Of a DNA stretch of 64,000 bases, positions 1 to 41,637 are shown piece after piece (position 1 is the stretch's first letter; each line of letters begins with the position of its first letter). The stretch comes from Tubulanus polymorphus. Its lineage: Eukaryota > Animalia > Nemertea. A program made the translations under genes and the position numbers. The notes below the pieces were generated by a model. It was not told the origin of the DNA. It saw nothing but the letters and a program-made list of their open reading frames with translations, and ran no database searches. The stretch spans positions 13,524,655 to 13,588,654 of the forward strand of contig NC_134033.1 in assembly GCF_964204645.1 (NCBI RefSeq). Reading direction: 5' to 3'.

Positions 1-3000
1 GTTGATGTGTCAGTCGAGGATGAAGTAGACGAATCCGTTGCTGATGTCGTATCGGTACTCGCCGAGGTCGATGTGTCTACCGCAGTGGAGGTGTCAGTCG
101 AAGACGAAATCGACGAATCCGTTGGTGATGTCGTCTCGGTGCTCACCGATGTCGATGTGTCTACCGTAGTGGAGCTGACAGTCGAGGATGACGTCGACGA
201 ATCCGTTGGTGTTGTCGTCTCGGCGCTCACCGAGGTCGATGTGTCTATCGAAGTGGATGTGTCAGTCGAGGATGAAGTAGACGAATCCGTTGGTGATGTC
301 GTATCGGTGCTCGCCGAGGTCGATGTGTCAACCGTAGTGGAGGTGTCAGTCGAAGATGAAGTCGACGAATCCGTTGGTGATGTCGTCTCGAAGCTCACCG
401 ATGTCGATGTGTCTACCGTAGTGGAGGTGTCAGTCGAGGACGAAGTAGACGAATCCGTTGGTGATGTCGTCACGGTGCTCGACGAGGTAGATATGTCTAC
501 CGAAGTTGAGCTGACAGTCGAGGACGTAGTAGACAAATCCGTTGTTAAGGTGGTATCGGTACTCGCCGAGGTCGATGTGTCTACCGTAGTGGAGCTGACA
601 GTCGAGGATGAAGTCGACGAATCCGTTGGTGTTGTCGTCTCGGTGCTCACCGAGGTCGATGTGTCTATCGAAGTGGATGTGTAAGTCGAGGATGAAGTAG
701 ACGAATCCGTTGGTGATGTCGTATCGGTGCTCGCCGAGGTCGATGTGTCAACCGTAGTGGAGGTGTCAGTCGAAGATGAAGTCGACGAATCCGTTGGTGA
801 TGTCGTCTCGGTGCTGACCGATGTCGATGTGTCCACCGTAGTGGAGCTGACAGTCGAGGATGAAGTAGACGAATCCGTTGGTGATGTCGTATCGGTGCTC
901 ACCGAGGTCGATGTGTCTACCGTAGTTGATGTGTCAGTCGAGGATGAAGTAGACGAATCCGTTGGTGATGTCGTATCGGTACTCGCCGAGGTCGATGTGT
1001 CTACCGTAGTGGAGCTGACAGTCGAGGATGAAGTCGATGAATCCTTCGGTGTTGTCGTCTCGGTGCTCACCGAGGTCGATGTGTCTACCGTAGTTGATGT
1101 GTCAGTCGAGGATGAAGTAGACGAATCCGTTGGTGATGTCGTCTCGGTGCTAGCCGATGTCGATGTGTCTACCGTAGTGGAGCTGACAGTGGAGGATGAA
1201 GTAGACGAATCCGTTGGTGATGTCGTCTCGATGCTCACCGATGTCGATGTGTCTACCGTAGTTGATGTGTCAGTCGAGGATGAAGTAGACGAATCCGTTG
1301 GTGATGTCGTCTCGGTGCTCACCGAGGTCGATGTGTCTATCGTAGTGGAGGGTTCAGTCGAGGACGAGGTAGACGAATCCGTTGTTAAGGTCGTATCGGT
1401 GCTCGCCGAGGTCGATGTGTCTACCGTAGTGGAGGTTTCAGTCGAGGACGAAGTAGACAAATCCGTTGATGAGGTCGTATCGGTACTCACCGAGGTCGAT
1501 GTGTCTACCGTAGTTGAGCTGACAGTCGAAGGAGAAGTAGATGAAATGGTTGGTGATGTCGTTTTGGTGCTAGCCGATGTCGATGTGTCTATCGTGGTTG
1601 ATGTGTCAGTTGAGGACGAAGTAGACGAATCCGTTAGTGATGTCGACTCGGTGCTCGACGAGGTCGATGTGTCTACTGTAGTGGATGTGTCAGTTGAGGA
1701 CGAAGTAGTCGAATCCGTTGGTGATGTCGACTCGGTGCTCGACGAGGTAGATGTGTCTACCGTTGTTGAGCTGACAGTCGAGGACGAAATAGACGAACCC
1801 GTTGGTGATGTCGTCTCGGTGCTCGCCGATGTTGATGTGTCCCTCGTAGTGGACGTGTCAGTCGAGGACGAAATAGACGAAACTGTTGTTGAGGTCGTAT
1901 CTGTGCTCACCGGGGTCGATGTGTCTACCGTAGTAGAGCTGGCAGTCGTGGATGAAATAGACGAATCCGTTGCCGATGTCGTCTCGGTGCTCGCCGAGGT
2001 CGATGTGTCTACCGTAGTGGATGTGTCAGTCGTCGAGGACGAAGTCGACGAAACCGTTGGTGATGTCGTCTCGGTGCTCGACGAGGTAGATGTATCTACC
2101 GTAGTTGAGCTGACAGTCGAAGGAGAAGTAGAAGAATCCGTTGGTGATGTCGTATCGGTGCTCGACGATATCGATGTGTCTACCGTAGTGGATGTGTCAG
2201 TTGCGGACGAAGTAGACGAATCCATTGGTGATGTCGTCACGGTGCTCGCCGATGTTGATATGTCCACCGTAGTGGAACTGGCAGTAGAGGACGAAGTTGA
2301 CGAATCAGTTGTTAAGGTCGTATCGCTACTCGCCAAGGTCGATATGTCCACCGTAGTGGATGTGTCAGTCGAGGACGAAATAGACGAATCCGTTGTTAAG
2401 GTCGTCTCTGTGCTCGCCGACGTCGATGTGTCTACCGTAGAGCTGACAGTCGAGGATGAAATAGACGAATCCGTTGGTGATGTTGTCTCGGTGCTCACCG
2501 TGGTAGATGTTTCTATCGTAGTTGAGCTGACAGTCGAAGGAGAAGTAGACGAATCCGTTGGTGATATCGTCACGGTGCTCGCCAATGTTGATGTGTCCAC
2601 CGTAGTGGATGTGTCAGTAGAGAACGAAGTAGACGAATCCGTTGGTGATGTCGTCACGGTGCTCGCCAATGTTGATGTGTTCACCGTAGTGGATGTGTCA
2701 GTCGAGGATGAAGTAGACGAATCTTTTGTGTTGGTCGTATCGGTGCTCGCCGATGTCGACGTGGTCACCGAAGTGGGGCTGGTAGTCGAGGAAGACGACG
2801 ACGAATCCGTTGGTGAGATATCCTCGGTACTCGCCGCAGTGGATGAATCAACTGTAGTGGAACTGAGAGTCGAGGATGACGTAGAAGAATCCGTTGGTGA
2901 GGTCACCTCGGTAGTCGCCGATGTGGAAGTATCAACTGTACTAGAGCTCAGAGTCGAGGACGACGACGACGAATCCGTTGGTGATGTCGTCACGGTGCTC

Positions 3001-6000: not shown

Positions 6001-9000
6001 GTCGTCTCGGTGCTCGCCGAGGTCGATGTGTCTACCGTAGAGCTGACAGACGAGGATGAAATAGACGAATCTGTTGCTGATGTCGACTCGGTGCTAGCCG
6101 ATGTCGATGTGTCTATCGTGGTTGATGTGTCAGTTGAGGACGAAGTAGACGAATCCGTTAGTGATGTCGACTCGGCGCTCGACGAGGTAGATGTGTCTAC
6201 CGTAGTTGAGCTGATAGTCGACGATGAAGTAGACGAATCCATTGGTGATGTCGTCTCGGTGATCGCCGAGGTCGATGTGTCTACCGTTGTGGATGTGTCA
6301 GTTGAGGTCGAAGTAGACGAATCCGTTGTTAAGGTCCTATCGGTGCTCGCCAATGTCGATGTGGTCACCGACGTGGGACTGGTAGTCGAGGATGATGTTG
6401 ACGAATACGTTGGTGATGTCGACGAGGTGCTCGACAAGGTCGATGTGTCTACCGTTGTTGAGCTGACAGTCGTGGATGAAATAGACGAATCCGTTGCCGA
6501 TGTCGTCTCGGTGCTCGCCGAGGTCAAAGTGTCTATCGTAGTGGATATGTCAGTTGAGGACGAAGTAGACGAATCCATTGGTGACGTCGTCTCGGTGCTC
6601 GACGAGGGTGTGTCTACCGTAGTGGATTTTTCAGTTGAGGACGAAGTAGTCGAATCCGTTGGTGATGTCGTCACGGTGCTCGACGAGGTAGATATGTCTA
6701 CCGAAGTTGAGCTGACAGTCGAGGACGTAGTAGACAAATCCGTTGTTAAGGTGGTATCGGTACTCGCCGAGGTCGATGTGTCTACCGTAGTGGAGGTGTC
6801 AGTCGAAGATGAAGTTGACGAATCCGTTGGTGATGTCGTCTCGGTGCTGACCGATGTCGATGTGTCCACCGTAGTGGAGCTGACAGTCGAGGATGAAGTC
6901 GACGAATCCGTTGGTGATGTCGTCTCGGTGCTCACCGAGGTCGATGTGTCTACCGTAGTTGATGTGTCAGTCGTGGACGAAGTAGACGAATCCGTTGGTG
7001 ATGTCGTATCGGTGCTCGTCGATGTTGATTTGTCCACCGTAGTGGAGGTTTCAGTCGAGGACGAAGTAGACGAATCCGTTGGTGATGTCGTCTCGGTGCT
7101 CGACGAGGTCGATGTGTCTACCGTAGTTGAGCTGACAGTCGAAGACGAAGTAGACAAATCCGTTGATGAGGTCGTATCGGTACTCACCGAGGTCGATGTG
7201 TCTACCGTAGTGAAGGTGTCAGTCGAGGACGAAGTAGACGAATCCGTTGGTGATGTCGTCTCGGTGCTCGCCGATGTTGATGTGTCCACCGTAGTGGAGG
7301 TGTCAGTCGAGGACGAAGTAGACGAATCCGTTGGTGATATCGTCTCGGTGCTCGACGAGGTCGATGTGTCTACCGTAGTTGAGCTGACAGTCGAGGACGA
7401 AGTAGACAAATCCGTTGTTGAGGTCGTATCGGTACTCACCGAGGTCGATGTGTCTACCGTAGTGGAGCTGACAGTCGAGGATGAAGTAGACGAATCCGTT
7501 GGTGATGTCGTATCGCTGCTCGCCGAGGTCGATGTGTCTACCGTAGTGGAGGTGTCAGTCGAGGATGAAGTAGACGAATCCGTTGTTGATGTCGTATCGG
7601 TACTCGCCGAAGACGATGTGTCTACCGCAGTGGAGCTGACAGTCGGGGACGAAGTAGACGAATCCGTTGCTGATGTCGTCTCGATGCTCGACGATGTAGA
7701 TGTGTCTACCGTAGTAGAGGTGTCAGTCGTGGACGAAGTAGACGAATCCGTTGGTGATGTCGTATCGGTGCTCGCCGAGGTCGATGTGTCTACCGTAGTG
7801 GAGGTGTCAGTCGAAGATGAAGTCGACGAATCCGTTGGTGATGTCGTCTCGGTGCTCACCGATGTCGATGTGTCTACCGTAGTGGAGGTGTCAGTCGAGG
7901 ACGAAGTAGACGAATCCGTTGGTGATGTCGTCACGGTGCTCGACGAGGTAGATGTGTCTACCGAAGTTGAGCTGACAGTCGAGGACGTAGTAGACAAATC
8001 CGTTGTTAAGGTCGTATCGGTACTCACCGAGGTCGATGTGTCTACCGTAGTGGAGCTGACAGTCGAGATTGAAGTAGACGAATCCGTTAGTGATGTTGTA
8101 TCGGTACTCGCCGAGGTCGATGTGTCTACCGTAGTGGAGCTGACAGTCGAGGATGAAGTAGACGAATCCGTTGTTGATGTCGTATCGGTACTCGCCGAGG
8201 ACGATGTGTCTACCGTAGTTGATGTGTCAGTCGAGGATGAAGTAGACGAATCCGTTGGTGATGTCGTCTCGGTGCTCACCGATGTCGATGTGTCTACCGT
8301 AGTGGAGGTGTCAGTCGAGGACGAAGTAGATGAATCCGTTGGTGATGTCGTCACGGTGCTCGACGAGGTAGATGTGTCTACCGAAGTTGAGCTGAAAGTC
8401 GAGGACGTAGTAGACAAATCCGTTGTTAAGGTGGTAACGGTACTCGCCGAGGTCGATGTGTCTACCGTAGTGGAGCTGACAGTCGAGGATGAAGTCGACG
8501 AATCCGTTGGTGTTGTCGTCTCGGTGCTCACCGAGGTCGATGTGTCTATCGTAGTGGATGTGTCAGTCGAGGATGAAGTAGACGAATCCGTTGGTGATGT
8601 CGTATCGGTACTCGCCGAGGACGCTGTGTCTACCGTAGTGGAGCTGACAGTCGAGGATGCAGTAGACGAATCCGTTGGTGATGTCGTATCGGTGCTCACC
8701 GAGGTCGATGTGTCTACCGTAGTTGATGTGTCAGTCGAGGATGAAGTAGACGAATCCGTTGGTGATGTCGTATCGGTACTCGCCGAGGACGATGTGTCTA
8801 CCGCAGTGGAGCTGACAGTCGGGGACGAAGTAGACGAATCCGTTGCTGATGTCGTCTCGATGCTCGACGATGTAGATGTGTCTACCGTAGTAGTGGTGTC
8901 AGTCGTGGACGAAGTAGACGAATCCGTTGGTGATGTCGTCTCGGTGCTCACCGATGTCGATGTGTCTACCGTAGTGGAGGTGTCAGACGAGGACGAAGTA

Positions 9001-12000
9001 GACGTATCCGTTGGTGATGTCGTCACGGTGCTCGACGAGGTAGATGTGTCTACCGAAGTTGAGCTGACAGTCGAGGACGAAGTAGACAAATCCGTTGTTA
9101 ATGTCGTATCGGTACTCGCCGAGGTCGATGTGTCTACCGTAGTGGAGCTGACAGTCGAGGATGAAGTCGACGAATCCGTTGGTTTTGTCGTCTCGGTGCT
9201 CACCGAGGTCGATGTGTCTATCGTAGTGGATGTGTCAGTCGAGGATGAAGTAGACGAATCCGTTGGTGATGTCGTATCCGTACTCGCCGAGGACGATGTG
9301 TCTACCGCAGTGGAGCTGACAGTCGGGGACGAAGTAGACGAATCCGTTGCTGATGTCGTCTCGATGCTCGACGATGTAGATGTGTCTACCGTATTAGAGG
9401 TGTCAGTCGTGGACGAAGTAGACGAATCCGTTGGTGATGTCGTATCGGTGCTCGCCGAGGACGATATGTCAACCGTAGTGGAGGTGTCAGTCGAAGATGA
9501 AGTCGACGAATCCGTTGGTGATGTCGTCTCGGTGCTCACCGATGTCGATGTGTCTACCGTAGTGGAGGTGTCAGTCGAGGACGAAGTAGACGAGTCCGTT
9601 GGTGATGTCGTCACGGTGCTCGAAGAGGTAGATATGTCTACCGAAGTTGAGCTGACAGTCGAGGACGTAGTAGACAAATCCGTTGTTAAGGTGGTATCGG
9701 TACTCGCCGAGGTCGATGTGTCTACCGTAGTGGAGCTGACAGTCGAGGATGAAGTCGACGAATCCGTTGGTGTTGTCGTCTCGGTGCTCAACGAGGTCGA
9801 TGTGTCTATCGAAGTGGATGTGTAAGTCGAGGATGAAGTAGACGAATCCGTTGGTGATGTCGTATCGGTGCTCGCCGAGGTCGATGTGTCAACCGTAGTG
9901 GAGGTGTCAGTCGAAGATGAAGTCGACGAATCCGTTGGTGATGTCGTCTCGGTGCTGACCGATGTCGATGTGTCCACCGTAGTGGAGCTGACAGTCGAGG
10001 ATGAAGTAGACGAATCCGTTGGTGATGTCGTATCGGTGCTCACCGAGGTCGATGTGTCTACCGTAGTTGATGTGTCAGTCGAGGATGAAGTAGACGAATC
10101 CGTTGGTGATGTCGTATCGGTACTCGCCGAGGTCGATGTGTCTACCGTAGTGGAGCTGACAGTCGAGGATGAAGTAGACGAATCCGTTGGTGATGTCGTC
10201 TCGGTGCTAGCCGATGTCGATGTGTCTACCTTAGTGGAGCTGACAGTGGAGGATGAAATAGACGAATCCGTTGGTGATGTCGTATCGGTGCTCGCCGAGG
10301 TCGATGTGTCTACCGTAGTGGAGCTGACAGTCGAGGATGAAGTAGACGAATCCGTTGGTGATGTCGTCACGGTGCTCGCCGATGTCGATGTGTCTACCGT
10401 AGTTGATGTGTCAGTTGAGGATGAAGTAGACGAATCCGTTGGTGATGTCGTCTCGATGCTCGCCGAGGTCGAAGTGTCTACCGTAGTTGATGTGTCAGTT
10501 GAGGATGAAGTAGACGAATCCGTTGGTGATGTCATATCGGTGCTCACCGAGGTCGATGTGTCTATCGTAGTGGAGGTGTCAGTCGAGGACGAGGTAGACG
10601 AATCCGTTGTTAAGGTCGTATCGGTGCTCGCCGAGGTCGATGTGTCTACCGTAGTGGAGGTGTCAGTCGAGGACGAAGTAGACGAATCGGTTGGTGATGT
10701 CGTCTCGGTGCTCGTCGATGTTGATTTGTCCACCGTAGTGGAGGTTTCAGTCGAGGACGAAGTAGACGAATCCGTTGGTGATGTCGTCTCGGTGCTCGAC
10801 GAGGTCGATGTGTCTACCGTAGTTGAGCTGACAGTCGAGGACAAAGTAGACAAATCCGTTGATGAGGTCGTATCGGTACTCACCGATGTCGATGTGTCTA
10901 CCGTAGTGGAGGTGTCAGTCGAGGACGAAGTAGACGAATCGGTTGGTGATGTCGTCTCGGTGCTCGTCGATGTTGATTTGTCCACCGTAGTGGAGGTTTC
11001 AGTCGAGGACGAAGTAGACGAATCCGTTGGTGATGTCGTCTCGGTGCTCGACGAGGTCGATGTGTCTACCGTAGTTGAGCTGACAGTCGAGGACAAAGTA
11101 GACAAATCCGTTGATGAGGTCGTATCGGTACTCACCGAGGTCGATGTGTCTACCGTAGTGAAGGTGTCAGTCGAGGACGAAGTAGACGAATCCGTTGGTG
11201 ATGTCGTCTCGGTGCTCGCCGATGTTGATGTGTCCACCGTAGTGGAGGTGTCAGTCGAGGACGAAGTAGACGAATCCGTTGGTGATATCGTCTCGGTGCT
11301 CGACGAGGTCGATGTGTCTACCGTAGTTGAGCTGACAGTCGAGGACGAAGTAGACAAATCCGTTGTTGAGGTCGTATCGGTACTCACCGAGGTCGATGTG
11401 TCTACCGTAGTGGAGCTGACAGTCGAGGATGAAGTAGACGAATCCGTTGGTGATGTCGTATCGGTACTCGCCGAGGTCGATGTGTCTACCGTAGTGGAGC
11501 TGACAGTCGAGGATGAAGTAGACGAATCCGTTGTTGATGTCGTATCGGTACTCGCCGAGGACGATGTGTCTACCGCAGTGGAGCTGACAGTCGGGGACGA
11601 AGTAGACGAATCCGTTGCTGATGTCGTCTCGATGCTCGACGATGTAGATGTGTCTACCGTAGTAGAGGTGTCAGTCGTGGACGAAGTAAACGAATCCGTT
11701 GGTGATGTCGTATTGGTGCTCGCCGAGGTCGATGTGTCTACCGTAGTGGAGGTGTCAGTCGAAGATGAAGTCGACGAATCCGTTGGTGATGTCGTCTCGG
11801 AGCTCACCGATGTCGATGTGTCTACCGTAGTTGATGTGACAGTCGAGGACGAAGTAGACGAATCCGTTGGTGTTGTCGTCTCGGTGCTCACCGAGGTCGA
11901 TATGTCTACCGTAGTGGATGTGTCAGTCGAGGATGAAGTAGACGAATCCGTTGGGGATGTCGTATCGGTACTCGCCGAGGTCGATGTGTCTACCGTAGTG

Positions 12001-15000
12001 GAGCTGACAGTCGAGGATGTAGTCGACGAATCCGTTGGTGATGTCGTATCGGTACTCGCCGAGGTCGATGTGTCTACCGTAGTGGAGCTGACAGTCGAGG
12101 ATGAAGTCGACGAATCCGTTGGTGTTGTCGTCTCGGTGCTCACCGATGTCGATGTGTCTACCGTAGTTGATGTGACAGTCGAGGACGAAGTAGACGAATC
12201 CGTTGGTGATGTCGTCTCGGTGCTCACCGAGGTCGATGTGTCTACCGTAGTGGAGGTATCAATCGAGGACGAAGTAGACGAATCCGTTGGTGTTGTCGTC
12301 TCGGTGCTCACCGTGGTCGATGTGTCTATCGTAGTTGATGTGTCAGTCGAGGATGAAGAAGACGAATCCGTTGGTGATGTCGTATCGGTGCTCGCCGATG
12401 TTGATGTGTCCACCGTAGTGGAGGTGTCAGTCGAGGACGAAGTAGACGAATCCGTTGGTGACGTCGTCTCTGTGCTCGCCGATGTTGATGTGTCCACCGT
12501 GGTGGAGGTGTCAGTCGAGGACGAAGTAAACGAATCCGTTGGTGATGTCGTATCGGTACTCGCCGAGGTCGATGTGTCTACCGTAGTTGAACTGACAGTC
12601 GAGGATGTAGTCGACGAATCCGTTGGTGATGTCGTATCGGTACTTCCCGAGGTCAATGTGTCTACCGTAGTGGAGCTGACAGTCGAGGATGAAGTCGACG
12701 AATCCGTTGGTGTTGTCGTCTCGGTGCTCACCGATGTCGATGTGTCTACCGTAGTTGATGTGACAGTCGCGGACGAAGTAGACGAATCCGTTGGTGATGT
12801 CGTCTCGGTGCTCGCCGATGTTGATGTGTCCACCGTGGTGGAGGTGTCAGTCGAGGACGAAGTAAACGAATCCGTTGGTGATGTCGTCTCGGTGCTCGCC
12901 GATGTTGATGTGTCCACCGTAGTTGAGCTGACAGTCGAGGACGAAGTAGACAAATCCGTTGGTGATGTCGTCTCGGTGCTCGCCGATGTCGATGTGTCTA
13001 CCGTAGTGGAGCTGACAGTCGAGGATGAAGTCGACGAATCCGTTGGTGTTGTCGACTCGGTGCTCACCGAGGTCGATGTGTCTACCGTAGTTGATGTGTC
13101 AGTCGAGGATGAAGTAGACGAATCCGTTGGTGATGTCGTCTCGGTGCTCGCCGATGTCGATGTGTCTATCGTAGTGGAGCTGACAGTCGAGGATGAAGTA
13201 GACGAATCCGTTGGTGATGTCGTCTCGCTGCTCGCCAATGTCGATGTGTCTACCGTAGTGGAGCTGACAGTCGAGGATGTAGTCGACGAATCTGTTTGTG
13301 TTGTCGTCTTGGTGCTCACCGAGGTCCATGTGTCTACCGTAGGTGATGTGTCAGTCGAGGATGAAGTAGACGAATCCGTTGCCGATGTCGTCTCGGTGCT
13401 CGCCGAGGTCGATGTGTCTACCGTAGTGGATGTGTCAGTCGTCGAGGACGAAGTCGACGAAACCGTTGGTGATGTCGTCTCGGTGCTCGACGAGGTAGAT
13501 GTATCTACCGTAGTTGAGCTGACAGTCGAAGGAGAAGTAGAAGAATCCGTTGGTGATGTCGTATCGGTGCTCGACGATATCGATGTGTCTACCGTAGTGG
13601 ATGTGTCAGTTGAGGACGGAGTAGACGAATCCATTGGTGATGTCGTCACGGTGCTCGCCGATGTTGATGTGTCCACCGTAGTGAAACTGGCAGTCGAGGA
13701 CGAAGTTGACGAATCAGTTGTTAAGGTCGTATCGGTACTCGCCAAGTTCGATATGTCCACCGTAGTGGATGTGTCAGTCGAGGATGAAGTAGACGAATCC
13801 GTTGGTGATGTCGTCTCGGTGCTCGCCGATGTTGATGTGTCCACCGTAGTGGAGGTGTCAGTCGAGGACGAAGTAGACGAATCCGTTGGTGATATCGTCT
13901 CGGTGCTCGACGAGGTCGATGTGTCTACCGTAGTTGAGCTGACAGTCGAGGACGAAGTTGACAAATCCGTTGTTGAGGTCGTATCGGTACTCACCGAGGT
14001 CGATGTGTCTACCGTAGTGGAGCTGACAGTCGAGGATGAAGTAGACGAATCCGTTGGTGATGTCGTATCGGTACTCGCCGAGGTCGATGTGTCTACCGTA
14101 GTGGAGCTGACAGTCGAGGATGAAGTAGACGAATCCGTTGTTGATGTCGTATCGGTACTCGCCGAGGACGATGTGTCTACCGCAGTGGAGCTGACAGTCG
14201 GGGACGAAGTAGACGAATCCGTTGCTGATGTCGTCTCGATGCTCGACGATGTAGATGTGTCTACCGTAGTAGAGGTGTCAGTCGTGGACGAAGTAAACGA
14301 ATCCGTTGGTGATGTCGTATCGGTGCTCGCCGAGGTCGATGTGTCTACCGTAGTGGAGGTGTCAGTCGAAGATGAAGTCGACGAATCCGTTGGTGATGTC
14401 GTCTCGGTGCTCACCGATGTCGATGTGTCTACCGTAGTTGATGTGACAGTCGAGGACGAAGTAGACGAATCCGTTGGTGTTGTCGTCTCGGTGCTCACCG
14501 AGGTCGATGTGTCTACCGTAGTGGATGTGTCAGTCGAGGATGAAGTAGACGAATCCGTTGGGGATGTCGTATCGGTACTCGCCGAGGTCGATGTGTCTAC
14601 CGTAGTGGAGCTGACAGTCGAGGATGTAGTCGACGAATCCGTTGGTGATGTCGTATCGGTACTCGCCGAGGTCGATGTGTCTACCGTAGTGGAGCTGACA
14701 GTCGAGGATGAAGTCGACGAATCCGTTGGTGTTGTCGTCTCGGTGCTCACCGATGTCGATGTGTCTACCGTAGTTGATGTGACAGTCGAGGACGAAGTAG
14801 ACGAATCCGTTGGTGATGTCGTCTCGGTGCTCACCGAGGTCGATGTGTCTACCGTAGTGGAGGTATCAATCGAGGACGAAGTAGACGAATCCGTTGGTGT
14901 TGTCGTCTCGGTGCTCGCCGATGTTGATGTGTCCACCGTAGTGGAGGTGTCAGTCGAGGATGAAGTAGACGAATCCGTTGGTGATGTCGTCTCTGTGCTC

Positions 15001-18000
15001 GCCGATGTTGATGTGTCCACCGTGGTGGAGGTGTCAGTCGAGGACGAAGTAAACGAATCCGTTGGTGATGTCGTATCGTTACTCGCCGAGGTCGATGTGT
15101 CTACCGTAGTTGAACTGACAGTCGAGGATGTAGTCGACGAATCCGTTGGTGATGTCGTATCGGTACTTCCCGAGGTCGATGTGTCTACCGTAGTGGAGCT
15201 GACAGTCGAGGATGAAGTCGACGAATCCGTTGGTGTTGTCGTCTCGGTGCTCACCGATGTCGATGTGTCTACCGTAGTTGATGTGACAGTCGCGGACGAA
15301 GTAGACGAATCCGTTGGTGATGTCGTCTCGGTGCTCGCCGATGTTGATGTGTCCACCGTGGTGGAGGTGTCAGTCGAGGACGAAGTAAACGAATCCGTTG
15401 GTGATGTCGTCTCGGTGCTCGCCGATGTTGATGTGTCCACCGTAGTTGAGCTGACAGTCGAGGACGAAGTAGACAAATCCGTTGGTGATGTCGTCTCGGT
15501 GCTCGCCGATGTCGATGTGTCTACCGTAGTGGAGCTGACAGTCGAGGATGAAGTCGACGAATCCGTTGGTGTTGTCGACTCGGTGCTCACCGAGGTCGAT
15601 GTGTCTACCGTAGTTGATGTGTCAGTCGAGGATGAAGTAGACGAATCCGTTGGTGATGTCGTCTCGGTGCTCGCCGATGTCGATGTGTCTATCGTAGTGG
15701 AGCTGACAGTCGAGGATGTAGTCGACGAATCCGTTTGTGTTGTCGTCTTGGTGCTCACCGAGGTCCATGTGTCTACCGTAGGTGATGTGTCAGTCGAGGA
15801 TGAAGTAGACGAATCCGTTGCCGATGTCGTCTCGGTGCTCGCCGAGGTCGATGTGTCTACCGTAGTGGATGTGTCAGTCGTCGAGGACGAAGTCGACGAA
15901 ACCGTTGGTGATGTCGTCTCGGTGCTCGACGAGGTAGATGTATCTACCGTAGTTGAGCTGACAGTCGAAGGAGAAGTAGATGAAATGGTTGGTGATGTCG
16001 TTTCGGTGCTCGCCGTGGTAGATGTGTCTATCGTAGTTGAGCTGACATTCGAAGGAGAAGTAGACGAATCCGTTGGTGATGTCGTATCGGTGCTCGACGA
16101 TATCGATGTGTCTACCGTAGTGGATGTGTCAGTTGAGGACGAAGTAGACGAATCCATTGGTGATGTCGTCACGGTGCTCGCCGATGTTGATGTGTCCACC
16201 GTAGTGAAACTGGCAGTCGAGGACGAAGTTGACGAATCAGTTGTTAAGGTCGTATCGGTACTCGCCAAGTTCGATATGTCCACCGTAGTGGATGTGTCAG
16301 TCGAGGATGAAGTAGACGAATCTTTTGTGTAGGTCGTATCGGTGCTCGCCGATGTCGACGTTGTCACCGAAGTGGGGCTGGTAGTCGAGGAAGACGACGA
16401 CGAATCCGTTGGTGAGATTGCCTCGGTACTCGCCGCAGTGGATGAATCAACTGTAGTGGAACTGAGAGTCGAGGATGACGTAGACGAATCCGTTGGTGAG
16501 GTCACCTCGGTAGTCGCCGATGTGGAAGTATCAACTGTAGTGGAACTGAGAGTCGAGGATGACGTAGATGAATCCGTTGGTGAGGTCACCTTGGTAGTCA
16601 CCGATGTGGAAGTATCAACTGTACTAGAGCTCAGAGTCGAGGACGACGAAGACGAATCCGTTGGTGATGTCGTCACGGTGCTCGCCGATGTTGATGTGTC
16701 CACCGTAGTGGAACTGACAGTCGAGGACGAAGTAGACGAATCCGTGGTCAAGGTCGTATCGGTGCTCGCCGATGTCGATGTCGTCATCGAAGAGGGGCTG
16801 GTAGTCGAGGACGATGTAGACGAATCTATTGGTGATGTCGTCACGGTGCTCGCCGAGGTCGATGTGTCTACCGTAGTGGATGTGTCAGTCGAGGACGAAG
16901 TAGACGATTCCGTTGGTGATGTCGTATCTGTGCTCACCGAGGTCGATGTGTCTACCGTAGTAGAGCTGACATTCGTGGATGAAATAGACGAATCCGTTGC
17001 CGATGTCGTCTCGGTGCTCGCCGAGGTCGATGTGTCTACCGTAGTGGATGTGTCAGTCGTCGAGGACGAAGTCGACGAAACCGTTGGTGATGTCGTCTCG
17101 GTGCTCGACGAGGTAGATGTATCTACCGTAGTTGAGCTGACAGTCGAAGGAGAAGTAGAAGAATCCGTTGGTGATGTCGTCACGGTGCTCACCGTGGTCG
17201 ATGTGTCTATCGTAGTTGATGTGTCAGTCGAGGATGAAGTAGACGAGCTGACAGTCGAAGGAGAAGTAGATGAAATGGTTGGTGATGTCGTTTCGGTGCT
17301 CGCCGTGGTAGATGTGTCTATCGTGGTTGATGTGTCAGTTGAGGACGAAGTAGACGAATCCGTTAGTGATGTCGACTCGTTGCTCGACGAGGTAGATGTG
17401 TCTACCGTTGTTGAGCTGACAGTCGAGGATGGAATAGGGGAATCCGTTGGTGATGTCGTCTCGGTGCTCGCCGAGGTCGATGTGTCTACCGTAGAGCTGA
17501 CAGACGAGAATGAAATAGACGAATCTGTTGCTGATGTCGACTCGGTGCTAGCCGATGTCGATGTGTCTATCGTGGTTGATGTGTTAGTTGAGGACGAAGT
17601 AGACGAATCCGTTAGTGATGTCGACTCGGTGCTCGACGAGGTCGATGTGTCTACCGTAGTTGATTTGTCAGTTGAGGATGAAGTAGACGAATCCGTTGGT
17701 GATGTCGTCTCGGTGCTCGCCGATGTCGATGTGTCTACCGTAGAGGCGCTGACAGTCGAGGATGAAGTAGACGAATCCGTTGGTGATGTCGACTCGGTGC
17801 TCGACGAGGTAGATGTGTCTACCGTTGTTGAGCTGACAGTCGAGGACGAAATAGACGAATCCGTTGGTGATATCGTCTCGGTGCTCGCCGATGTTGATGT
17901 GTCACTCGTAGTGGACGTTTCAGTCGAGGACGAAATAGACGAAACAGTTGTTGAGGTCGTATCTGTGCTCACCGGGGTCGATGTGTCTACCGTAGTAGAG

Positions 18001-20190
18001 CTGACAGTCGTGGATGAAATAGACGAATCCGTTGCCGATGTCGTCTCGGTGCTCGCCGAGGTCGATGTGTCTACCGTAGTGGATGTGTCAGTCGTCGAGG
18101 ACGAAGTCGACGAAACCGTTGGTGATGTCGTCTCGGTGCTCGACGAGGTAGATGTATCTACCGTAGTTGAGCTGACAGTCGAAGGAGAAGTAGATGAAAT
18201 GGTTGGTGATGTCGTTTCGGTGCTCGTCGTGGTAGATGTATCTACCGTAGTTGAGCTGACATTCGAAGGAGAAGTAGAAGAATCCGTTGGTGATGTCGTA
18301 TCGGTGCTCGACGATATCGATGTGTCTACCGTAGTGGATGTGTCAGTTGAGGACGAAGTAGACGAATCCATTGGTGATGTCGTCACGGTGCTCGCCGATG
18401 TTGATGTGTCCACCGTAGTGGTACTGGCAGTCGAGGACGAAGTTGACGAATCAGTTGTTAAGGTCGTATCGGTGCTCGCCGATGTCGATGTCGTCATCGA
18501 AGAGGGGCTGGTAGTCGAGGACGATGTAGACGAATCTATTGGTGATGTCGTCACGGTGCTCGCCGAGGTCGATGTGTCTACCGTAGTGGATGTGTCAGTC
18601 GAGGACGAAGTAGACGATTCCGTTGGTGATGTCGTCTCTGTGCTCGCCGACGTCGATGTGTCTACCGTAGAGCTGACAGTCGAGGATGAAATAGACGAAT
18701 CCGTTGGTGATGTCGCCTCGGTGCTCACCGTGGTAGATGTTTTTATCGTAGTTGAGCTGACAGTCGAAGGAGAAATAGACGAAACCGTTGGTGATGTCGT
18801 CAGGGTGCTCGCCAATGTTGATGTGTCCATCGTAGCTGATGTGTCAGTCGACGATGAAGTAGACGAATCTTTTGTGTAGGTCGTATCGGTGCTCGCCGAT
18901 ATCGATGTGGTCACCGAAGTGGGGCTGGTAGTCGAGGAAGACGACGACGAATCCGTTGGTGATGTCGTCTCGGTGCTTTCCGAGGTCGATGTGTCTACCG
19001 TTGTGGATGTGTCAGTTGAGGTCGAAGTAGACGAATCCGCTGTTAAGGTCGTATCGGTGCTCGCCAATGTCGATGTGGTCACCGACGTGGGACTGGTAGT
19101 CGAGGATGATGTTGACGAATACGTTGGTGATGTCGACGAGGTGCTCGACGAGGTCGATGTGTCTACCGTTGTTGAGCTGACAGTCGTGGATGAAATAGAC
19201 GAATCCGTTGCCGATGTCGTCTCGGTGCTCGCCGAGGTCAAAGTGTCTATCGTAGTGGATGTGTCAGTTGAGGACGAAGTAGTCGAATCCGTTGGTGATG
19301 TCGTCACGGTGCTCGCCGATGTTGATGTGTCCACCGTAGTGGAACTGGCAGTCGAGGACGAAGTTGACGAATCAGTTGTTAAGGTCGTATCGGTACTCGC
19401 CAAGGTCGATATGTCCACCGTAGTGGAGGTGTCAGTCGAGGACGAAGTAGACGAATCCGTTGTTGAGGTCGTCTCTGTGCTCGCCGACGTCGATGTGTCT
19501 ACCGTAGAGCTGACAGTCGAGGACGAAATAGACGAATCCGTTGGTGATGTTGTCTCGGTGCTCACCGTGGTAGATGTTTCTATCGTAGTTGAGCTGACAG
19601 TCGATGGAGAAGTAGACGAATCCGTTGGTGATGTCGTCACGGTGCTCGCCAATGTTGATGTGTCCATCGTAGCTGATGTGTCAGTCGAGGATGAAGTAGA
19701 CGAATCTTTTGTGTAGGTCGTATCGGTGCTCGCCGATGTCGACGTGGTCACCGAAGTGGGGCTGGTAGTCGAGGAAGACGACGACGAATCCGTTGGTGAG
19801 ATTGCCTCGCTACTCGCCGCAGTGGATGAATCAACTGTAGTGGAACTGAGAGTCGAGGATGACGTAGACAAATCCGTTGGTGAGGTCACCTCGGTAGTCG
19901 CCGATGTGGAAGTATCAACTGTAGTGGAACTGAGAGTCGAGGATGACGTAGACGAATCCGTTGGTGATGTCACCTCGGTACTAGCCGAAGTGGAAGTATC
20001 AACTGAAGTGGAGCTGAGAATCGAGGATGATGTAGACGAATCCGTTGATGTAATCTCCTTTGTACTCGCCGAGGTTGATATGTCTGTAGAGCTGACAGTT
20101 GAGGGTGACGAATCCGTTTTTGAAGTCGTCTCGGAGTTCACCGAAGTTGATGATTTTACCGTTGAGGAGCTGACAGATGTGGATATATCA
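1..20190. repeat. Coding tandem array, 84-bp unit (variants of 81 and 87 bp), ~240 copies, with higher-order block duplications
   Basis: Unit ~gtggagctgacagtcgaggatgaagtagacgaatccgttggtgatgtcgtctcggtgctcgccgaggtcgatgtgtctaccgta recurs at 84-bp spacing (e.g. 1, 85, 169). Indels seen are multiples of 3. Confidence 0.97.
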
Positions 20191-20306
20191 GTCGTGGATT
20201 CGTTTAACATTTGCACTCTGGATGCGTTCAGGCAGCATGCTATCCATATCACTAGCAATGTCACACTTAAGTTCTTATTGGTTTTTACGTAGTTATTCAT
20301 ACCCAT
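1..20306 (-). CDS. Giant secreted Ser/Thr/Asp-rich mucin-like tandem-repeat protein (5' part; at least 6,768 aa, C-terminus outside window)
   Basis: Reverse complement from ATG 20306 reads MGMNNYVKTNKNLSVTLLVIWIACCLNASRVQMLNESTTDISTSVSSSTVKSSTSVNSETTSKTDSSPS (basic n-region plus hydrophobic h-region, i.e. a signal peptide), then the 28-aa unit ~TTVDTSTSASTETTSPTDSSTSSSTVSS (about 75% S+T). All six + shadow ORFs start in one frame (7, 727, 9868, 16342, 18889, 19726), so there is no frameshift over 20 kb. The + strand stops read as Tyr in the minus frame, and spot-checked positions showed no minus-frame stop. Probably absent from the ORF track because no stop occurs before base 1. Confidence 0.9.
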   Translation of the reverse strand, partial: MGMNNYVKTNKNLSVTLLVIWIACCLNASRVQMLNESTTDISTSVSSSTVKSSTSVNSETTSKTDSSPSTVSSTDISTSASTKEITSTDSSTSSSILSSTSVDTSTSASTEVTSPTDSSTSSSTLSSTTVDTSTSATTEVTSPTDLSTSSSTLSSTTVDSSTAASSEAISPTDSSSSSSTTSPTSVTTSTSASTDTTYTKDSSTSSSTDTSATMDTSTLASTVTTSPTDSSTSPSTVSSTTIETSTTVSTETTSPTDSSISSSTVSSTVDTSTSASTETTSTTDSSTSSSTDTSTTVDISTLASTDTTLTTDSSTSSSTASSTTVDTSTSASTVTTSPTDSTTSSSTDTSTTIDTLTSASTETTSATDSSISSTTVSSTTVDTSTSSSTSSTSPTYSSTSSSTTSPTSVTTSTLASTDTTLTADSSTSTSTDTSTTVDTSTSESTETTSPTDSSSSSSTTSPTSVTTSISASTDTTYTKDSSTSSSTDTSATMDTSTLASTLTTSPTVSSISPSTVSSTTIKTSTTVSTEATSPTDSSISSSTVSSTVDTSTSASTETTSPTESSTSSSTDTSTTVDTSTSASTVTTSPIDSSTSSSTTSPSSMTTSTSASTDTTLTTDSSTSSSTASTTTVDTSTSASTVTTSPMDSSTSSSTDTSTTVDTSISSSTDTTSPTDSSTSPSNVSSTTVDTSTTTSTETTSPTISSTSPSTVSSTTVDTSTSSSTETTSPTVSSTSSSTTDTSTTVDTSTSASTETTSATDSSISSTTVSSTTVDTSTPVSTDTTSTTVSSISSSTETSTTSDTSTSASTETISPTDSSISSSTVSSTTVDTSTSSSTESTSPTDSSTSSSTVSASTVDTSTSASTETTSPTDSSTSSSTDKSTTVDTSTSSSTESTSLTDSSTSSSTNTSTTIDTSTSASTESTSATDSSISFSSVSSTVDTSTSASTETTSPTDSPIPSSTVSSTTVDTSTSSSNESTSLTDSSTSSSTDTSTTIDTSTTASTETTSPTISSTSPSTVSSSTSSSTDTSTTIDTSTTVSTVTTSPTDSSTSPSTVSSTTVDTSTSSSTETTSPTVSSTSSSTTDTSTTVDTSTSASTETTSATDSSISSTNVSSTTVDTSTSVSTDTTSPTESSTSSSTDTSTTVDTSTSASTVTTSPIDSSTSSSTTSPSSMTTSTSASTDTTLTTDSSTSSSTVSSTTVDTSTSASTVTTSPTDSSSSSSTLSSSTVDTSTSVTTKVTSPTDSSTSSSTLSSTTVDTSTSATTEVTSPTDSSTSSSTLSSTTVDSSTAASTEAISPTDSSSSSSTTSPTSVTTSTSASTDTTYTKDSSTSSSTDTSTTVDISNLASTDTTLTTDSSTSSSTASFTTVDTSTSASTVTTSPMDSSTSSSTDTSTTVDTSISSSTDTTSPTDSSTSPSNVSSTTIDTSTTASTETTSPTISSTSPSTVSSTTVDTSTSSSTETTSPTVSSTSSSTTDTSTTVDTSTSASTETTSATDSSTSSSTDTSPTVDTWTSVSTKTTTQTDSSTTSSTVSSTTIDTSTSASTETTSPTDSSTSSSTDTSTTVDTSTSVSTESTTPTDSSTSSSTVSSTTVDTSTSASTETTSPTDLSTSSSTVSSTTVDTSTSASTETTSPTDSFTSSSTDTSTTVDTSTSASTETTSPTDSSTSSATVTSTTVDTSTSVSTETTTPTDSSTSSSTVSSTTVDTSTSGSTDTTSPTDSSTTSSTVSSTTVDTSTSASNDTTSPTDSFTSSSTDTSTTVDTSTSASTETTSPTDSSTSSSTDTSTTVDTSTSASTETTTPTDSSTSSSIDTSTTVDTSTSVSTETTSPTDSSTSSSTVTSTTVDTSTSVSTETTTPTDSSTSSSTVSSTTVDTSTSASTDTTSPTDSSTTSSTVSSTTVDTSTSASTDTTSPTDSSTSSSTDTSTTVDTSTSVSTETTTPTDSSTSSSTVTSTTVDTSTSVSTETTSPTDSSTSSSTDTSTTVDTSTSASTDTTSPTDSFTSSTTDTSTTVDTSTSSSIETTSATDSSTSSPTVSSTAVDTSSSASTDTTSTTDSSTSSSTVSSTTVDTSTSASTDTTSPTDSSTSSSTVSSTTVDTSTSVSTDTTSTTDLSTSSSTVSSTTVDTSTSSSTETISPTDSSTSSSTDTSTTVDTSTSASTETTSPTDSSTSSSTDTSTTVDISNLASTDTTLTTDSSTSSSTASFTTVDTSTSASTVTTSPMDSSTPSSTDTSTTVDTSISSSTDTTSPTDSSTSPSTVSSTTVDTSTSSSTETTSPTVSSTSSSTTDTSTTVDTSTSASTETTSATDSSTSSSTDTSPTVDTWTSVSTKTTTQTDSSTTSSTVSSTTVDTSTLASSETTSPTDSSTSSSTVSSTTIDTSTSASTETTSPTDSSTSSSTDTSTTVDTSTSVSTESTTPTDSSTSSSTVSSTTVDTSTSASTETTSPTDLSTSSSTVSSTTVDTSTSASTETTSPTDSFTSSSTDTSTTVDTSTSASTETTSPTDSSTSSATVTSTTVDTSTSVSTETTTPTDSSTSSSTVSSTTVDTLTSGSTDTTSPTDSSTTSSTVSSTTVDTSTSASTDTTSPTDSFTSSSTDTSTTVDTSTSASTETTSPTDSSTSSSTDTSTTVDTSTSASTDTTSPTDSSSSSSTDTSTTIDTSTTVSTETTTPTDSSTSSSIDTSTTVDTSTSVSTETTSPTDSSTSSSTVTSTTVDTSTSVSTETTTPTDSSTSSSTVSSTTVDTSTSASTDTTSPTDSSTTSSTVSSTTVDTSTSASTDTTSPTDSSTSSSTDTSTTVDISTSVSTETTTPTDSSTSSSTVTSTTVDTSTSVSSETTSPTDSSTSSSTDTSTTVDTSTSASTNTTSPTDSFTSSTTDTSTTVDTSTSSSIETTSATDSSTSSPTVSSTAVDTSSSASTDTTSTTDSSTSSSTVSSTTVDTSTSASTDTTSPTDSSTSSSTVSSTTVDTSTSVSTDTTSTTDLSTSSSTVSSTTVDTSTSSSTETISPTDSSTSSSTDTSTTVDTSTSASTETTSPTDSSTSSSTDTFTTVDTSTSVSTDTTSSTDLSTLSSTVSSTTVDTSTSSSTETTSPTDSSTSSSTETSTTVDKSTSTSTETTSPTDSSTSSSTDTSTTVDTSTSVSTDTTSSTDLSTLSSTVSSTTVDTSTSSSTETTSPTDSSTSSSTETSTTVDKSTSTSTETTSPTDSSTSSSTDTSTTVDTSTSASTDTTLTTDSSTSSSTDTSTTIDTSTSVSTDMTSPTDSSTSSSTDTSTTVDTSTSASIETTSPTDSSTSSSTDTSTTVDTSTSASTVTTSPTDSSTSSSTVSSTTVDTSTSASTDTTSPTDSSISSSTVSSTKVDTSTSASTETTSPTDSSTSSSTVSSTTVDTSTSASTDTTSPTDSSTSSSTDTSTTVDTSTSVSTDTTSPTDSSTSSSTVSSTTVDTSTSVSTETTSPTDSSTSSSTDTSTTVDTSTSASTDTTSPTDSSTSSSTYTSTSIDTSTSLSTETTTPTDSSTSSSTVSSTTVDTSTSASTDTTLTTDLSTTSSTVSSTSVDISTSSSTVTTSPTDSSTSSSTDTSTTVDTSTSVSTETTSPTDSSTSSSTDTSTTVDISSSASTDTTSPTDSSTSSTTDTSNTVDTSTSSSIETTSATDSSTSSPTVSSTAVDTSSSASTDTTSPTDSSTSSSTDTSTTIDTSTSVSTETTKPTDSSTSSSTVSSTTVDTSTSASTDTTLTTDLSTSSSTVSSTSVDTSTSSSTVTTSPTDTSTSSSSDTSTTVDTSTSVSTETTSPTDSSTSSTTDTTTTVDTSTSSSIETTSATDSSTSSPTVSSTAVDTSSSASTDTTSPTDSSTSSSTDTSTTVDTSTSVSTDTTSPTDSSTASSTVSSTTVDTASSASTDTTSPTDSSTSSSTDTSTTIDTSTSVSTETTTPTDSSTSSSTVSSTTVDTSTSASTVTTLTTDLSTTSSTFSSTSVDTSTSSSTVTTSPTDSSTSSSTDTSTTVDTSTSVSTETTSPTDSSTSSSTDTSTTVDTSSSASTDTTSTTDSSTSSSTVSSTTVDTSTSASTDTTSLTDSSTSISTVSSTTVDTSTSVSTDTTLTTDLSTTSSTVSSTSVDTSTSSSTVTTSPTDSSTSSSTDTSTTVDTSTSVSTETTSPTDSSTSSSTDTSTTVDTSTSASTDTTSPTDSSTSSTTDTSTTVDTSTSSSIETTSATDSSTSSPTVSSTAVDTSSSASTDTTSTTDSSTSSSTDTSTTVDTSTSASSDTTSPTDSSTSSSTVSSTTVDTSTSVSTDTTSTTDLSTSSSTVSSTTVDTSTSSSTETISPTDSSTSSSTDTSTTVDTSTSASTETTSPTDSSTSSSTDTFTTVDTSTSVSTDTTSSTDLSTSSSTVSSTTVDTSTSSSTETTSPTDSSTSSSTETSTTVDKSTSTSTDTTSPTDSSTSSTTDTSTTVDTSTSVSTETTSPTDSSTSSSTVSSTTVDTSTSVSTETTSPTDSSTSSSTDTSTTVDTSTSASTDTTLTTDLSTTSSTVSSTSVDISTSSSTVTTSPTDSTTSSSTEKSTTVDTPSSSTETTSPMDSSTSSSTDISTTIDTLTSASTETTSATDSSISSTTVSSTTVDTSTLSSTSSTSPTYSSTSSSTTSPTSVTTSTLASTDRTLTTDSSTSTSTDTSTTVDTSTSAITETTSPMDSSTSSSTISSTTVDTSTSSSAESTSLTDSSTSSSTDTSTTIDTSTSASTESTSATDSSISSSSVSSTVDTSTSASTETTSPTDSSISSSTVSSTTVDTSTSSSNESTSPTDSTTSSSTDTSTTVDTSTSSSTESTSPTDSTTSSSTDTSTTVDTSSSSTETTSPIDSSTSSSTDTSTTIDTLTSASSETTSATDSSISSTTVSSTTVDTSTSSSTESKSPTYSSTSSSTTSPTSVTTSTLASTDTTLTTDSSTSSSTDTSTTVDTSTSASTVTTSPTDSSTSPSTVSSTMIETSTTVSTEATSPTDSSISSSTVSSTVDTSTSASTETTSPTESSTSSSTDTSTTVDTSTSASTVTTSLIDSSTSSSTTSPSSMTTSTSASTDTTLTTDSSTSSSTVSSTTVDTSTSASTVTTSPTDSSTSPSTVSSTTVDTSTSSSTETTSPTVSSTSSSTTDTSTTVDTSTSASTETTSATDSSISSTTASSTTVDTSTPVSTDTTSTTVSSISSSTDTSTTRDTSTSASTETTSPTGSSILSSTVSSTTVDTSTSSSTESTSPTDSTTSSSTDTSTTVDTSTSSSTESTSLTDSSTSSSTDISTTIDTSTSASTETTSPTISSTSPSTLSSTTVDKSTSSSTETTSPTVSTTSSSTDTSTTVDTSTSSSTESTSLTDSSTSSSTDTSTTIDTSTSASTESTSATDSSISSSSVSSTVDTSTSASTETTSPTDSSISSSTVSSTTVDTSTSSSNESTSPTDSTTSSSTDTSTTVDTSTSSSTESTSPTDSTTSSSTDTSTTVDTSSSSTETTSPIDSSTSSSTDTSTTVDTSTSASTETTSATDSSTSSSTDTSPTVDTSTSVSTKTTTQTDSSTTSSTVSSTTVDTSTLASTETTSPTDSSTSSSTVSSTTIDTSTSASTETTSPTDSSTSSSTDTSTTVDTSTSVSTESTTPTDSSTSSSTVSSTTVDTSTSASTETTSTTDLSTSSSTVSSTTVDTSTSASTETTSPTESSTSSSTDTSTTVDTSTSASTVTTSLIDSSTSSSTTSPSSMTTSTSASTDTTLTTDSSTSSSTVSSTTVDTSTSASTVTTSPTDSSSSSSTLSSSTVDTSTSATTEVTSPTDSSTSSSTLSSTTVDSSTAASTEDISPTDSSSSSSTTSPTSVTTSTSASTDTTNTKDSSTSSSTDTSTTVNTSTLASTVTTSPTDSSTSFSTDTSTTVDTSTLASTVTISPTDSSTSPSTVSSTTIETSTTVSTETTSPTDSSISSSTVSSTVDTSTSASTETTLTTDSSISSSTDTSTTVDISTLASSDTTLTTDSSTSSSTASSTTVDISTSASTVTTSPMDSSTSSATDTSTTVDTSISSSTDTTSPTDSSTSPSTVSSTTVDTSTSSSTETTSPTVSSTSSSTTDTSTTVDTSTSASTETTSATDSSISSTTASSTTVDTSTPVSTDTTSTTVSSISSSTDTSTTRDTSTSASTETTSPTGSSISSSTVSSTTVDTSTSSSTESTSPTDSTTSSSTDTSTTVDTSTSSSTESTSLTDSSTSSSTDTSTTIDTSTSASTKTTSPTISSTSPSTVSSTTVDTSTSVSTDTTSSTDLSTSSSTETSTTVDTSTSASTDTTLTTDSSTSSSTEPSTTIDTSTSVSTETTSPTDSSTSSSTDTSTTVDTSTSVSIETTSPTDSSTSSSTVSSTTVDTSTSASTETTSPTDSSTSSSTDTSTTVDTSTSVSTETTTPKDSSTSSSTVSSTTVDTSTSASTDTTSPTDSSTSSSTDTSTTVDTSTSVSTDTTSPTDSSTSSSTVSSTTVDTSTSVSTETTSPTDSSTSSSTDTSTTVDTSTSASTDTTSPTDSSTSSSTYTSTSIDTSTSVSTETTTPTDSSTSSSTVSSTTVDTSTSASTDTTLTTDLSTTSSTVSSTSVDISTSSSTVTTSPTDSSTSSSTDTSTTVDTSTSVSFETTSPTDSSTSSSTDTSTTVDTSTSASTDTTSPTDSSTSSSTDTSTSIDTSTSVSAETTTPTDSSTSSSTVSSTTVDTSTSVSTETTSPTDSSISSSTDTSTAVDTSTSASTDTTSATDSSTSSSTDTS

Positions 20307-20371: not shown

Positions 20372-20722
20372 CTGAGAATGATGCAAACGTCTCCATTCTT
20401 CCGATCTTTGTAAAATTGTAACTTGTAATTTTCCACAAAAATCGTTCTTCAAATAAACCTGGCGATTATGGTTCGATTATTTTTCTTATATTTTCAAAAA
20501 TATGAAATAATTGTTTGACCAGTAGTTTCACATTGTTATACTCAGTAAATCATTTTCTTACCTGACCATTGGATTGTTTGTATTTTCGATTGTCTCTAAA
20601 CTACAATCTGTGGAAACTGTTGAGTTATCCTTCACGTAAAATGAATATTCTGACCTTTAATTGAATTTTGGTTAATGATTATTCCTCGGTGTGATGTCCC
20701 AGGACGAAGTTTTAGTATATAA
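20372..20722 (-). promoter_or_regulatory. Putative 5'UTR intron (20372-20561) and TATA-like box (~20716-20722) of the mucin-like gene
   Basis: Minus-strand donor CAG|GTAAGA at 20561, acceptor TTCTCAG|A at 20372, and TATATA about 155 bp upstream of the donor. Confidence 0.45.
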
Positions 20723-37197: not shown

Positions 37198-37285
37198 TAT
37201 CAGATGGCCAGTCTGACTCTGTCTCTTAGTAAAATGAGATTTTCCACTGTCTTGTTTTTATTCACAGAGTAGGCTCCGTGTGAAG

Positions 37286-41637
<4,352 letters not shown>

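Follow-up and report, generated by a model that had tools for sequence, protein, structure and literature searches.

A predicted membrane-tethered giant mucin gene and its larger sister gene in the ribbon worm Tubulanus polymorphus

The window analysed here is a 64,000-nucleotide stretch of the ribbon worm Tubulanus polymorphus (Nemertea), contig NC_134033.1 (C9 below), positions 13,524,655-13,588,654, and it was read together with 110 kb extending to its left. The gene under study, gene A, occupies C9:13,504,372-13,544,960 on the minus strand, begins inside the window and runs out of its left edge towards a sister gene, gene B. From window position 20306 down to 1, six-frame translation gave a minus frame of 6,768 codons with no stop, while the other frames of this interval held 148-574 stops, except one plus frame with 6. 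A sequence-only reading of the window had described an uninterrupted minus-strand open reading frame (ORF) of more than 20 kb that was missing from the ORF list, and both statements are borne out; the frame is missing because ORFs running off the window are unlisted. Extending the translation leftwards, as that reading had proposed, revealed no in-frame stop: the frame continues for another 18.3 kb, is open to C9:13,506,336 and ends in a GT donor. Exon 1 of gene A thus covers C9:13,506,338-13,544,960 (window -18,317 to 20,306), that is, 38.6 kb or 12,874 codons from ATG to donor, of which window 1-20306 is about half. The whole stop-free stretch is 12,893 codons long, and a separate ORF report for this place also gave 12,893 amino acids. 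Exon 1 alone encodes 1.26 MDa, larger still than the >0.6 MDa first proposed, and exon 1 of gene B encodes 2.27 MDa, with isoelectric points near 4. With its nine coding exons, gene A would encode about 13,264 amino acids, counted as exon 1 plus the 390-residue cassette of the RefSeq sister protein. Its parts are as follows, in window positions unless marked otherwise.

20437-20990, minus: upstream non-coding region, putative promoter and 5′ untranslated region of gene A; 85% DNA match to C9:13498647-13499212, upstream of gene B
20223-20306, minus: start codon (20304-20306) and signal-peptide-like N-terminus MGMNNYVKTNKNLSVTLLVIWIACCLNA, from sequence and hydropathy; 66% identity to the gene B copy at C9:13498316-13498432
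20048-20222, minus: degenerate Ser/Thr-rich units between signal peptide and regular array, from the translation and the Tandem Repeats Finder array edge at 20047
1-20047, minus: 5′ 20 kb of the 84-bp/28-residue array (predicted mucin domain), from its 0 stops, units and consensus; the array reaches C9:13,506,338
C9:13,504,372-13,506,256 (L020:6073-7957, outside the window), minus: exons 2-9 of gene A (SEA-like, Cys module, EGF-like, transmembrane, tail), from AG/GT sites and phases

The predicted protein begins with MGMNNYVKTNKNLSVTLLVIWIACCLNASRV, its ATG standing in the context ACAATGG. A basic n-region is followed by the hydrophobic core LSVTLLVIWIACCL (9-residue Kyte-Doolittle mean up to 3.0) and a polar stretch, and hydropathy together with alignment indicated that this signal-peptide shape is kept in gene B. 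The start and signal peptide had already been placed at 20306 from the sequence, and the repeat had been said to set in about 35 residues after the start, which agrees with the translation.

In the window, Tandem Repeats Finder places the array of gene A at 8-20047, where the period is 84 bp and matches make up 83-85% and indels 0-1%; GC content is 0.52-0.54 within it, up from 0.36-0.40 in the flanking DNA. The 28-residue unit consensus, DSSTSSSTDTSTTVDTSTSASTETTSPT, contains 21-22 Ser/Thr, 3-4 Asp/Glu and one Pro, and the part in the window is composed of 36.5% Ser, 36.1% Thr, 9.1% Asp, 6.0% Val, 3.1% Pro, 2.7% Ala, 2.2% Glu, 0.37% Lys and 0.06% Arg, so the unit composition proposed at first sight (21 of 28 Ser+Thr, 3-4 acidic residues, about one Pro and almost no Lys or Arg) agrees with the measured figures. 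The repeat domain as a whole, all within the one 38.6-kb exon, has 72.6% Ser+Thr and about 11% Asp+Glu. Units of non-standard length were counted in both arrays.

Gene A array: 459 units, 48 of non-standard length (81, 87, 78, 90, 72, 93 and 96 bp)
Gene B array: 830 units, 12 of non-standard length (81, 72, 78 and 87 bp)

All 60 of these differ from the standard by multiples of 3; the claim that indels keep the frame therefore holds for 48 of the 48 odd-length units in the exon of gene A. Identity to the consensus is 90% in the gene A array, falling to just 70% in its first tenth, and 92% in the more homogeneous array of gene B. Neighbouring units are 79% identical, and 203 distinct protein units were found among 411. 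Identical 48-mers recur most often about 9.5 kb apart in gene A and about 10.2 kb apart in gene B, in diffuse higher-order blocks, and two plus-frame stops, at window 684 and 9825, lie 9,141 bp apart in near-identical flanks; this indicates higher-order segmental amplification inside the arrays.

Exon 1 ends in GATATAA at a donor reading GTTAGT, and past it lie eight short exons with AG/GT bounds and mutually consistent phases, all on the minus strand (positions in L020).

E2, 7836-7957, minus: SEA-like domain, N-terminal part
E3, 7677-7738, minus: SEA-like domain, middle part
E4, 7413-7603, minus: begins S/NGSVIYQY
E5, 7134-7329, minus: four-Cys module and start of the EGF-like module
E6, 6820-6993, minus: end of the EGF-like module, transmembrane segment VIAISLGAVFGVLLIAIIFTVIIIFV, RRRKKR
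Three tail exons, ending at TAG at 6073, minus: 151-residue Ser/Arg-rich tail, also with Tyr

When E4 was compared exhaustively by phmmer with 1.84 billion representatives, there was one true match, the RefSeq protein XP_074658466.1 of T. polymorphus (546 residues; LOC141911364), which belongs to the 3′ end of gene B; a second match was rejected as chance similarity to an unrelated repeat protein. The splice junctions of XP_074658466.1 in gene B are exactly those read here. Mapped to gene B, the protein is 100% identical in 5 of 7 matched pieces, and the other two loosely overrun exon edges; mapped to gene A, it is 95-97% identical through the EGF-like exon and 80% identical at the last exon, with one loose match crossing introns over the membrane-helix and tail exons. 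XP_074658466.1 served as the spliced proxy for domain searches, and the exons of gene A were searched singly. The 69.8-kb exon of gene B has 23,258 codons, of which the RefSeq protein covers the last 156, starting from an internal Met, so that about 23,100 residues of gene B are missing from the annotation; no model was found over the cassette of gene A.

Gene B lies at C9:13,426,682-13,498,432, 5.9 kb downstream of gene A, its array 8 kb to the left of that of gene A. Its 69.8-kb exon 1 sits in a stop-free minus frame of 23,262 codons (C9:13,428,656-13,498,441), and the predicted protein totals about 23,648 residues. The unit consensus and the signal-peptide shape are common to both genes, whose C-terminal cassettes are 98-100% identical, introns included, but gene B has a 69.8-kb exon and 830 units against 38.6 kb and 459 in gene A, and the N-terminal regions are just 66-74% identical. 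Because the cassettes are so much more alike than the signal-peptide region or the upstream DNA (85%), the comparison suggests 3′ gene conversion or mosaic duplication between the two genes. The 3′ cassettes (L020:5855-8100 in gene A, L021:7467-9726 in gene B) differ by indels in introns only. A test of exon against intron conservation between the two genes was discarded as powerless, the cassette being 98-100% identical throughout.

The genome search found the N-terminus and the cassette in genes A and B only. The 28-residue repeat family recurs in a multi-SEA gene 11 Mb away (C9:2.516-2.532 Mb, minus strand), which shares with gene A this Ser/Thr/Asp repeat family, an intron just before xGSV and a Cys module, DPC..C..GY.C, that blastp showed to be related (E ~2e-4, small database). 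Unlike gene A, it carries several short repeat blocks between SEA domains, in a MUC16-like manner, rather than one giant exon, and its SEA domains score 24-25 bits, just under the Pfam cut-off of 26.4 bits. A second repeat, of the SGTTGSTVS type, was also seen in that gene (C9:2,515,001-2,535,000, minus strand). Protein searches with the exon-1/exon-2 junction, the cassette and E4, with the repeat left out as low-complexity, returned no relatives outside T. polymorphus.

Across the two arrays, 36,134 minus-strand codons offer 11,502 single-base routes to a stop, and none has been taken; at 5% neutral divergence about 190 stops would be expected, a rough figure, the units being non-independent copies. 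The mirror plus frame has 19 stops over both arrays, against 0 in the minus frame, and chance is not enough to account for the open minus frame. Third codon positions vary about twice as much as positions 1-2, which shows that one frame is coding but not which, because the wobble positions of the minus frame and the near-open plus frame coincide; for the same reason the codon-position test was dropped as a strand discriminator. The near-openness of the plus frame is a by-product of the minus-strand composition, since a plus stop can arise only opposite a minus-strand Tyr, His or Gln codon. The question of strand is decided by the stop counts, by the ATG and hydrophobic N-terminus conserved in gene B, and by the phased donor with intact downstream exons: the minus strand codes. 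Mirror ORFs on the plus strand lie at window 727-9825, 9868-16332 and 16342-18879, reach 3,032 amino acids and are rich in Val, Glu, Asp and Ser, and the longest in the array of gene B has 11,150 amino acids; such ORFs could mislead ORF-based gene callers.

Exon 1 repeats pass straight into a Cys-free juxtamembrane domain of 130 residues that carries a G/SVVV-type autoproteolysis motif, NG-SVIYQY in gene A and GSVI at residue 220 of XP_074658466.1, a likeness at motif level. GSVI falls at the site of self-cleavage in SEA domains, and an intron stands directly before it, as in the near-threshold SEA units (24-25 bits) at C9:2.52 Mb. A genome-wide SEA scan found 12 other places, the locus of genes A and B not among them. 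A custom profile of SEA N-terminal halves, built from 10 SEA matches in this genome (2 above the Pfam cut-off and 8 near it), put exon 2 of gene A in first place and exon 2 of gene B in second when run on 1,765 six-frame segments (E 0.003, 13.4 bits), and among the language-model neighbours of residues 158-292 the ten best with a family were all SEA clusters (0.82-0.83), which is to be read as a lead only. An ESM-feature search with E4 alone returned ankyrin noise and was set aside, half a domain being unrecognisable. The juxtamembrane domain is likely to have a SEA fold and is a candidate for formal membership of the SEA family.

The four-Cys module encoded in E5 is followed by an EGF-like module whose six Cys follow CVCNESYTGSEC, an EGF_1-type pattern. 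Pfam EGF families match it below their cut-offs, and its PDB matches to betacellulin, TGF-alpha and ADAM22 were not significant. The SEA-like domain is followed by one such module and preceded by none. The hydrophobic stretch VIAISLGAVFGVLLIAIIFTVIIIFV then leads into RRRKKR as a stop-transfer signal; the helix was modelled with a predicted local distance difference test (pLDDT) score of 84-96 at residues ~370-400, and weak Pfam matches of transmembrane type were found. The signal-peptide shape, this helix and the 151-residue cytoplasmic tail together give a single-pass type-I layout. In the gene B cassette protein no Pfam match to VWD, C8, TIL or CK was found, and of the genome's 108 VWD matches even the nearest is about 600 kb from gene A; the prediction that N-terminal domains of VWD type are lacking is in line with this.

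Given this arrangement, we read gene A, with a probability of about 0.72, as a nine-coding-exon gene for a type-I membrane-tethered, polyanionic mucin of about 13,264 residues. The product is predicted to be membrane-tethered because exon 1 splices in phase to exons for the SEA-like domain, the EGF-like module, the transmembrane segment with RRRKKR and the tail; it is probably a mucin of the cell surface and not freely secreted, and only cleavage or shedding could release it. The sequence-only reading had proposed a secreted glyco- or phosphoprotein, with mucus, tube, cocoon, adhesive or mineral matrix as possible uses; its giant, acidic, low-proline and mucin-like Ser/Thr character stands, whereas simple secretion is at odds with the transmembrane helix and the tail exons in phase.

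Several results weigh against a membrane-tethered mucin. Pfam SEA (PF01390) gave no match at E<=10 on the exons of gene A or on XP_074658466.1, and neither exons 4 and 5 nor XP_074658466.1 found a SEA match or anything significant among PDB sequences. The single-sequence AlphaFold2 model of XP_074658466.1 has a mean pLDDT of 38.7 and is unusable outside the transmembrane helix; no alignment was available for structure prediction because no relatives were found. The protein searches with the exon-1/exon-2 junction, the cassette and E4 returned only the RefSeq model of gene B, no RNA or protein support was found, and the array length of gene A rests on one assembly. Furthermore, a proline-rich composition of the proline/threonine/serine (PTS) type was not found, proline making up 3.1-3.2%, about one residue per 28-residue unit. 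Composition-based PTS finders require more proline, and the O-glycosylation density of the repeat is an assumption because 3.2% is well below classical PTS domains.

Worms of the genus Tubulanus live in secreted tubes and are very mucous, and this habit, together with the signal-peptide-like start and a GSVI motif that could permit release, would suit a freely secreted structural polymer of mucus, tube lining or adhesive, in which the membrane cassette is a delivery device or is skipped by alternative 3′ processing and the released 1.26-MDa polyanion is the functional form. Nemertean mucus is likewise described as thick (PMC6410017). However, exon 1 has no in-frame stop before its donor, the transmembrane and long tail exons are in phase and intact in both paralogues, and polymerising domains (VWD, C8, CK) are lacking from the gene B cassette protein, with no VWD within ~600 kb, so that a freely secreted polymer seems unlikely. 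Phosphophoryn consists of DSS repeats, and DSS and STE motifs, 3-4 acidic residues per unit and low proline are also what an acidic phosphoprotein would show, if DSS and S-x-E units were phosphorylated by secretory-pathway kinases into a phosphophoryn-like polyanion for ion binding or for a mineral or adhesive matrix. Yet Thr equals Ser (36% each), as is usual in O-glycosylated mucin domains but not in phosphophoryn, and the membrane-anchored layout fits cell-surface mucins; we give this explanation very little credence.

The least credible account takes the array for non-coding satellite DNA or for a dead gene, its open frame following from composition, or takes its length for an assembly artefact. 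The opposite strand is indeed nearly open: its frame has 6 stops over window 1-20306, and ORFs in the gene B array reach the 11,150 amino acids noted above. In addition, word-index searches found no transcript-derived protein matches, and long arrays are hard to assemble. The openness of the plus frame is nevertheless automatic, its stops depending on minus-strand Tyr, His or Gln codons, and a decaying sequence is difficult to reconcile with 0 stops against 11,502 one-step routes, with 60 of 60 length variants in multiples of 3 and twofold third-position variation, or with the way both copies are bounded, by an ATG and signal peptide on one side and on the other by a phased donor leading to intact exons. 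As for an artefact, the assembled arrays contain no Ns, and the divergence of their units (79% between neighbours, 203 distinct of 411) favours a correct long-read assembly.

If gene A encodes a membrane-tethered mucin, its signal peptide would direct the product into the endoplasmic reticulum and along the secretory pathway. Dense O-glycosylation in the Golgi would turn the repeat into a stiff, extended polyanionic brush about 3 micrometres long; mucin domains extend by about 0.25 nm per residue. At about 11% Asp+Glu, its net charge would be near -1,400. The juxtamembrane domain, if it has a divergent SEA fold, may self-cleave at G/SVI and leave the brush attached non-covalently, to be shed under force. 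The brush could form a hydrated polyanionic epithelial coat, as glycocalyx or lubricant, with shed ectodomains feeding the mucus, and the cytoplasmic tail may signal or anchor. Genes A and B may have arisen by tandem duplication followed by unit amplification.

In layout the predicted product resembles MUC3, MUC12 and MUC17 (and also MUC13 and MUC1) but is not a member of that group. Shared with them are the signal peptide, the Ser/Thr repeat in one giant exon, a Cys-free juxtamembrane domain with G/SV(V/I), an EGF-like module, the single transmembrane helix, a tail containing Ser and Tyr, and paralogues in a tandem cluster. MUC3/12/17 are arranged EGF-SEA-EGF, whereas gene A has a single EGF-like module after its SEA-like domain, and no sequence similarity to them could be detected. 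Human MUC12 ranges from 4,677 to 23,080 residues, and its giant variable number tandem repeat exon is the largest human coding exon (PMC13345508); the size predicted for the gene A product matches this range. Ser+Thr reaches 73% in gene A, with 3% proline and 11% Asp+Glu, against ~25-52% Ser+Thr in human mucins (PMC13345508). Homologues of MUC3/12/17 are apparently absent from chicken and fish (PMC1552070), and because of this and the lack of sequence homology, orthology of gene A to them is excluded; without homology, and with a different EGF arrangement and composition, the likeness would therefore be convergent or due to independent domain shuffling. With the gel-forming mucins MUC2, MUC5AC, MUC5B and MUC6, gene A shares a huge central Ser/Thr repeat exon, but it is without VWD, C8, TIL and CK domains (Pfam, on the cassette) and has a predicted membrane anchor instead. 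Dentin phosphophoryn (DSPP), like other acidic Ser/Asp repeat phosphoproteins, is likewise very acidic, rich in Ser, poor in proline and basic residues and marked by DSS triplets, whereas gene A has Thr equal to Ser, a 28-residue unit and a predicted membrane anchor; this comparison is one of composition, for which homology is not expected.

Beyond gene A and its relatives, the window contains several other features. Directly upstream of gene A, at 21358-31897 on the minus strand, are exons with C-type lectin, kringle, immunoglobulin and FN3-like motifs, whose 3′ end is about 1 kb from the gene A ATG. Exons of PIG-U, a glycosylphosphatidylinositol transamidase subunit, lie at 37280-40600 on the plus strand (Pfam PF06728, E 1.6e-31 at 40067-40597, with a weak N-terminal match at 37280-37522), and a (TA)n microsatellite is found near 39.9-40.0 kb. 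At 59461-60322 on the plus strand, CT-rich low-complexity DNA with overlapping ORFs of LSPSLS type (87-176 amino acids) is simple sequence and probably non-coding.

For annotation, these genes serve as a warning, in that gene B has been reduced to a 546-residue "uncharacterized protein" and no gene A model was found; both would escape mucin inventories that draw on predicted proteomes, proline-dependent PTS finders or Pfam SEA. Gene A is a matter of descriptive biology rather than a new mechanism. We suggest, tentatively and at less than even odds, that surface mucins of PTS, SEA-like, EGF and transmembrane parts, previously treated as a vertebrate development, either evolved independently in ribbon worms or came down to them from an early bilaterian, here with an unusual domain (73% Ser/Thr, 3% Pro, 11% acidic) that is possibly both glycosylated and phosphorylated, and with 38.6- and 69.8-kb exons that might rank among the longest animal coding exons. 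If expressed, gene A would provide a lophotrochozoan example of a micrometre-scale membrane-tethered mucin, and would show that the layout of giant exon, cleavable domain, EGF and anchor arises outside vertebrates without detectable sequence kinship, and that a strongly acidic composition with almost no proline is possible in a mucin domain.

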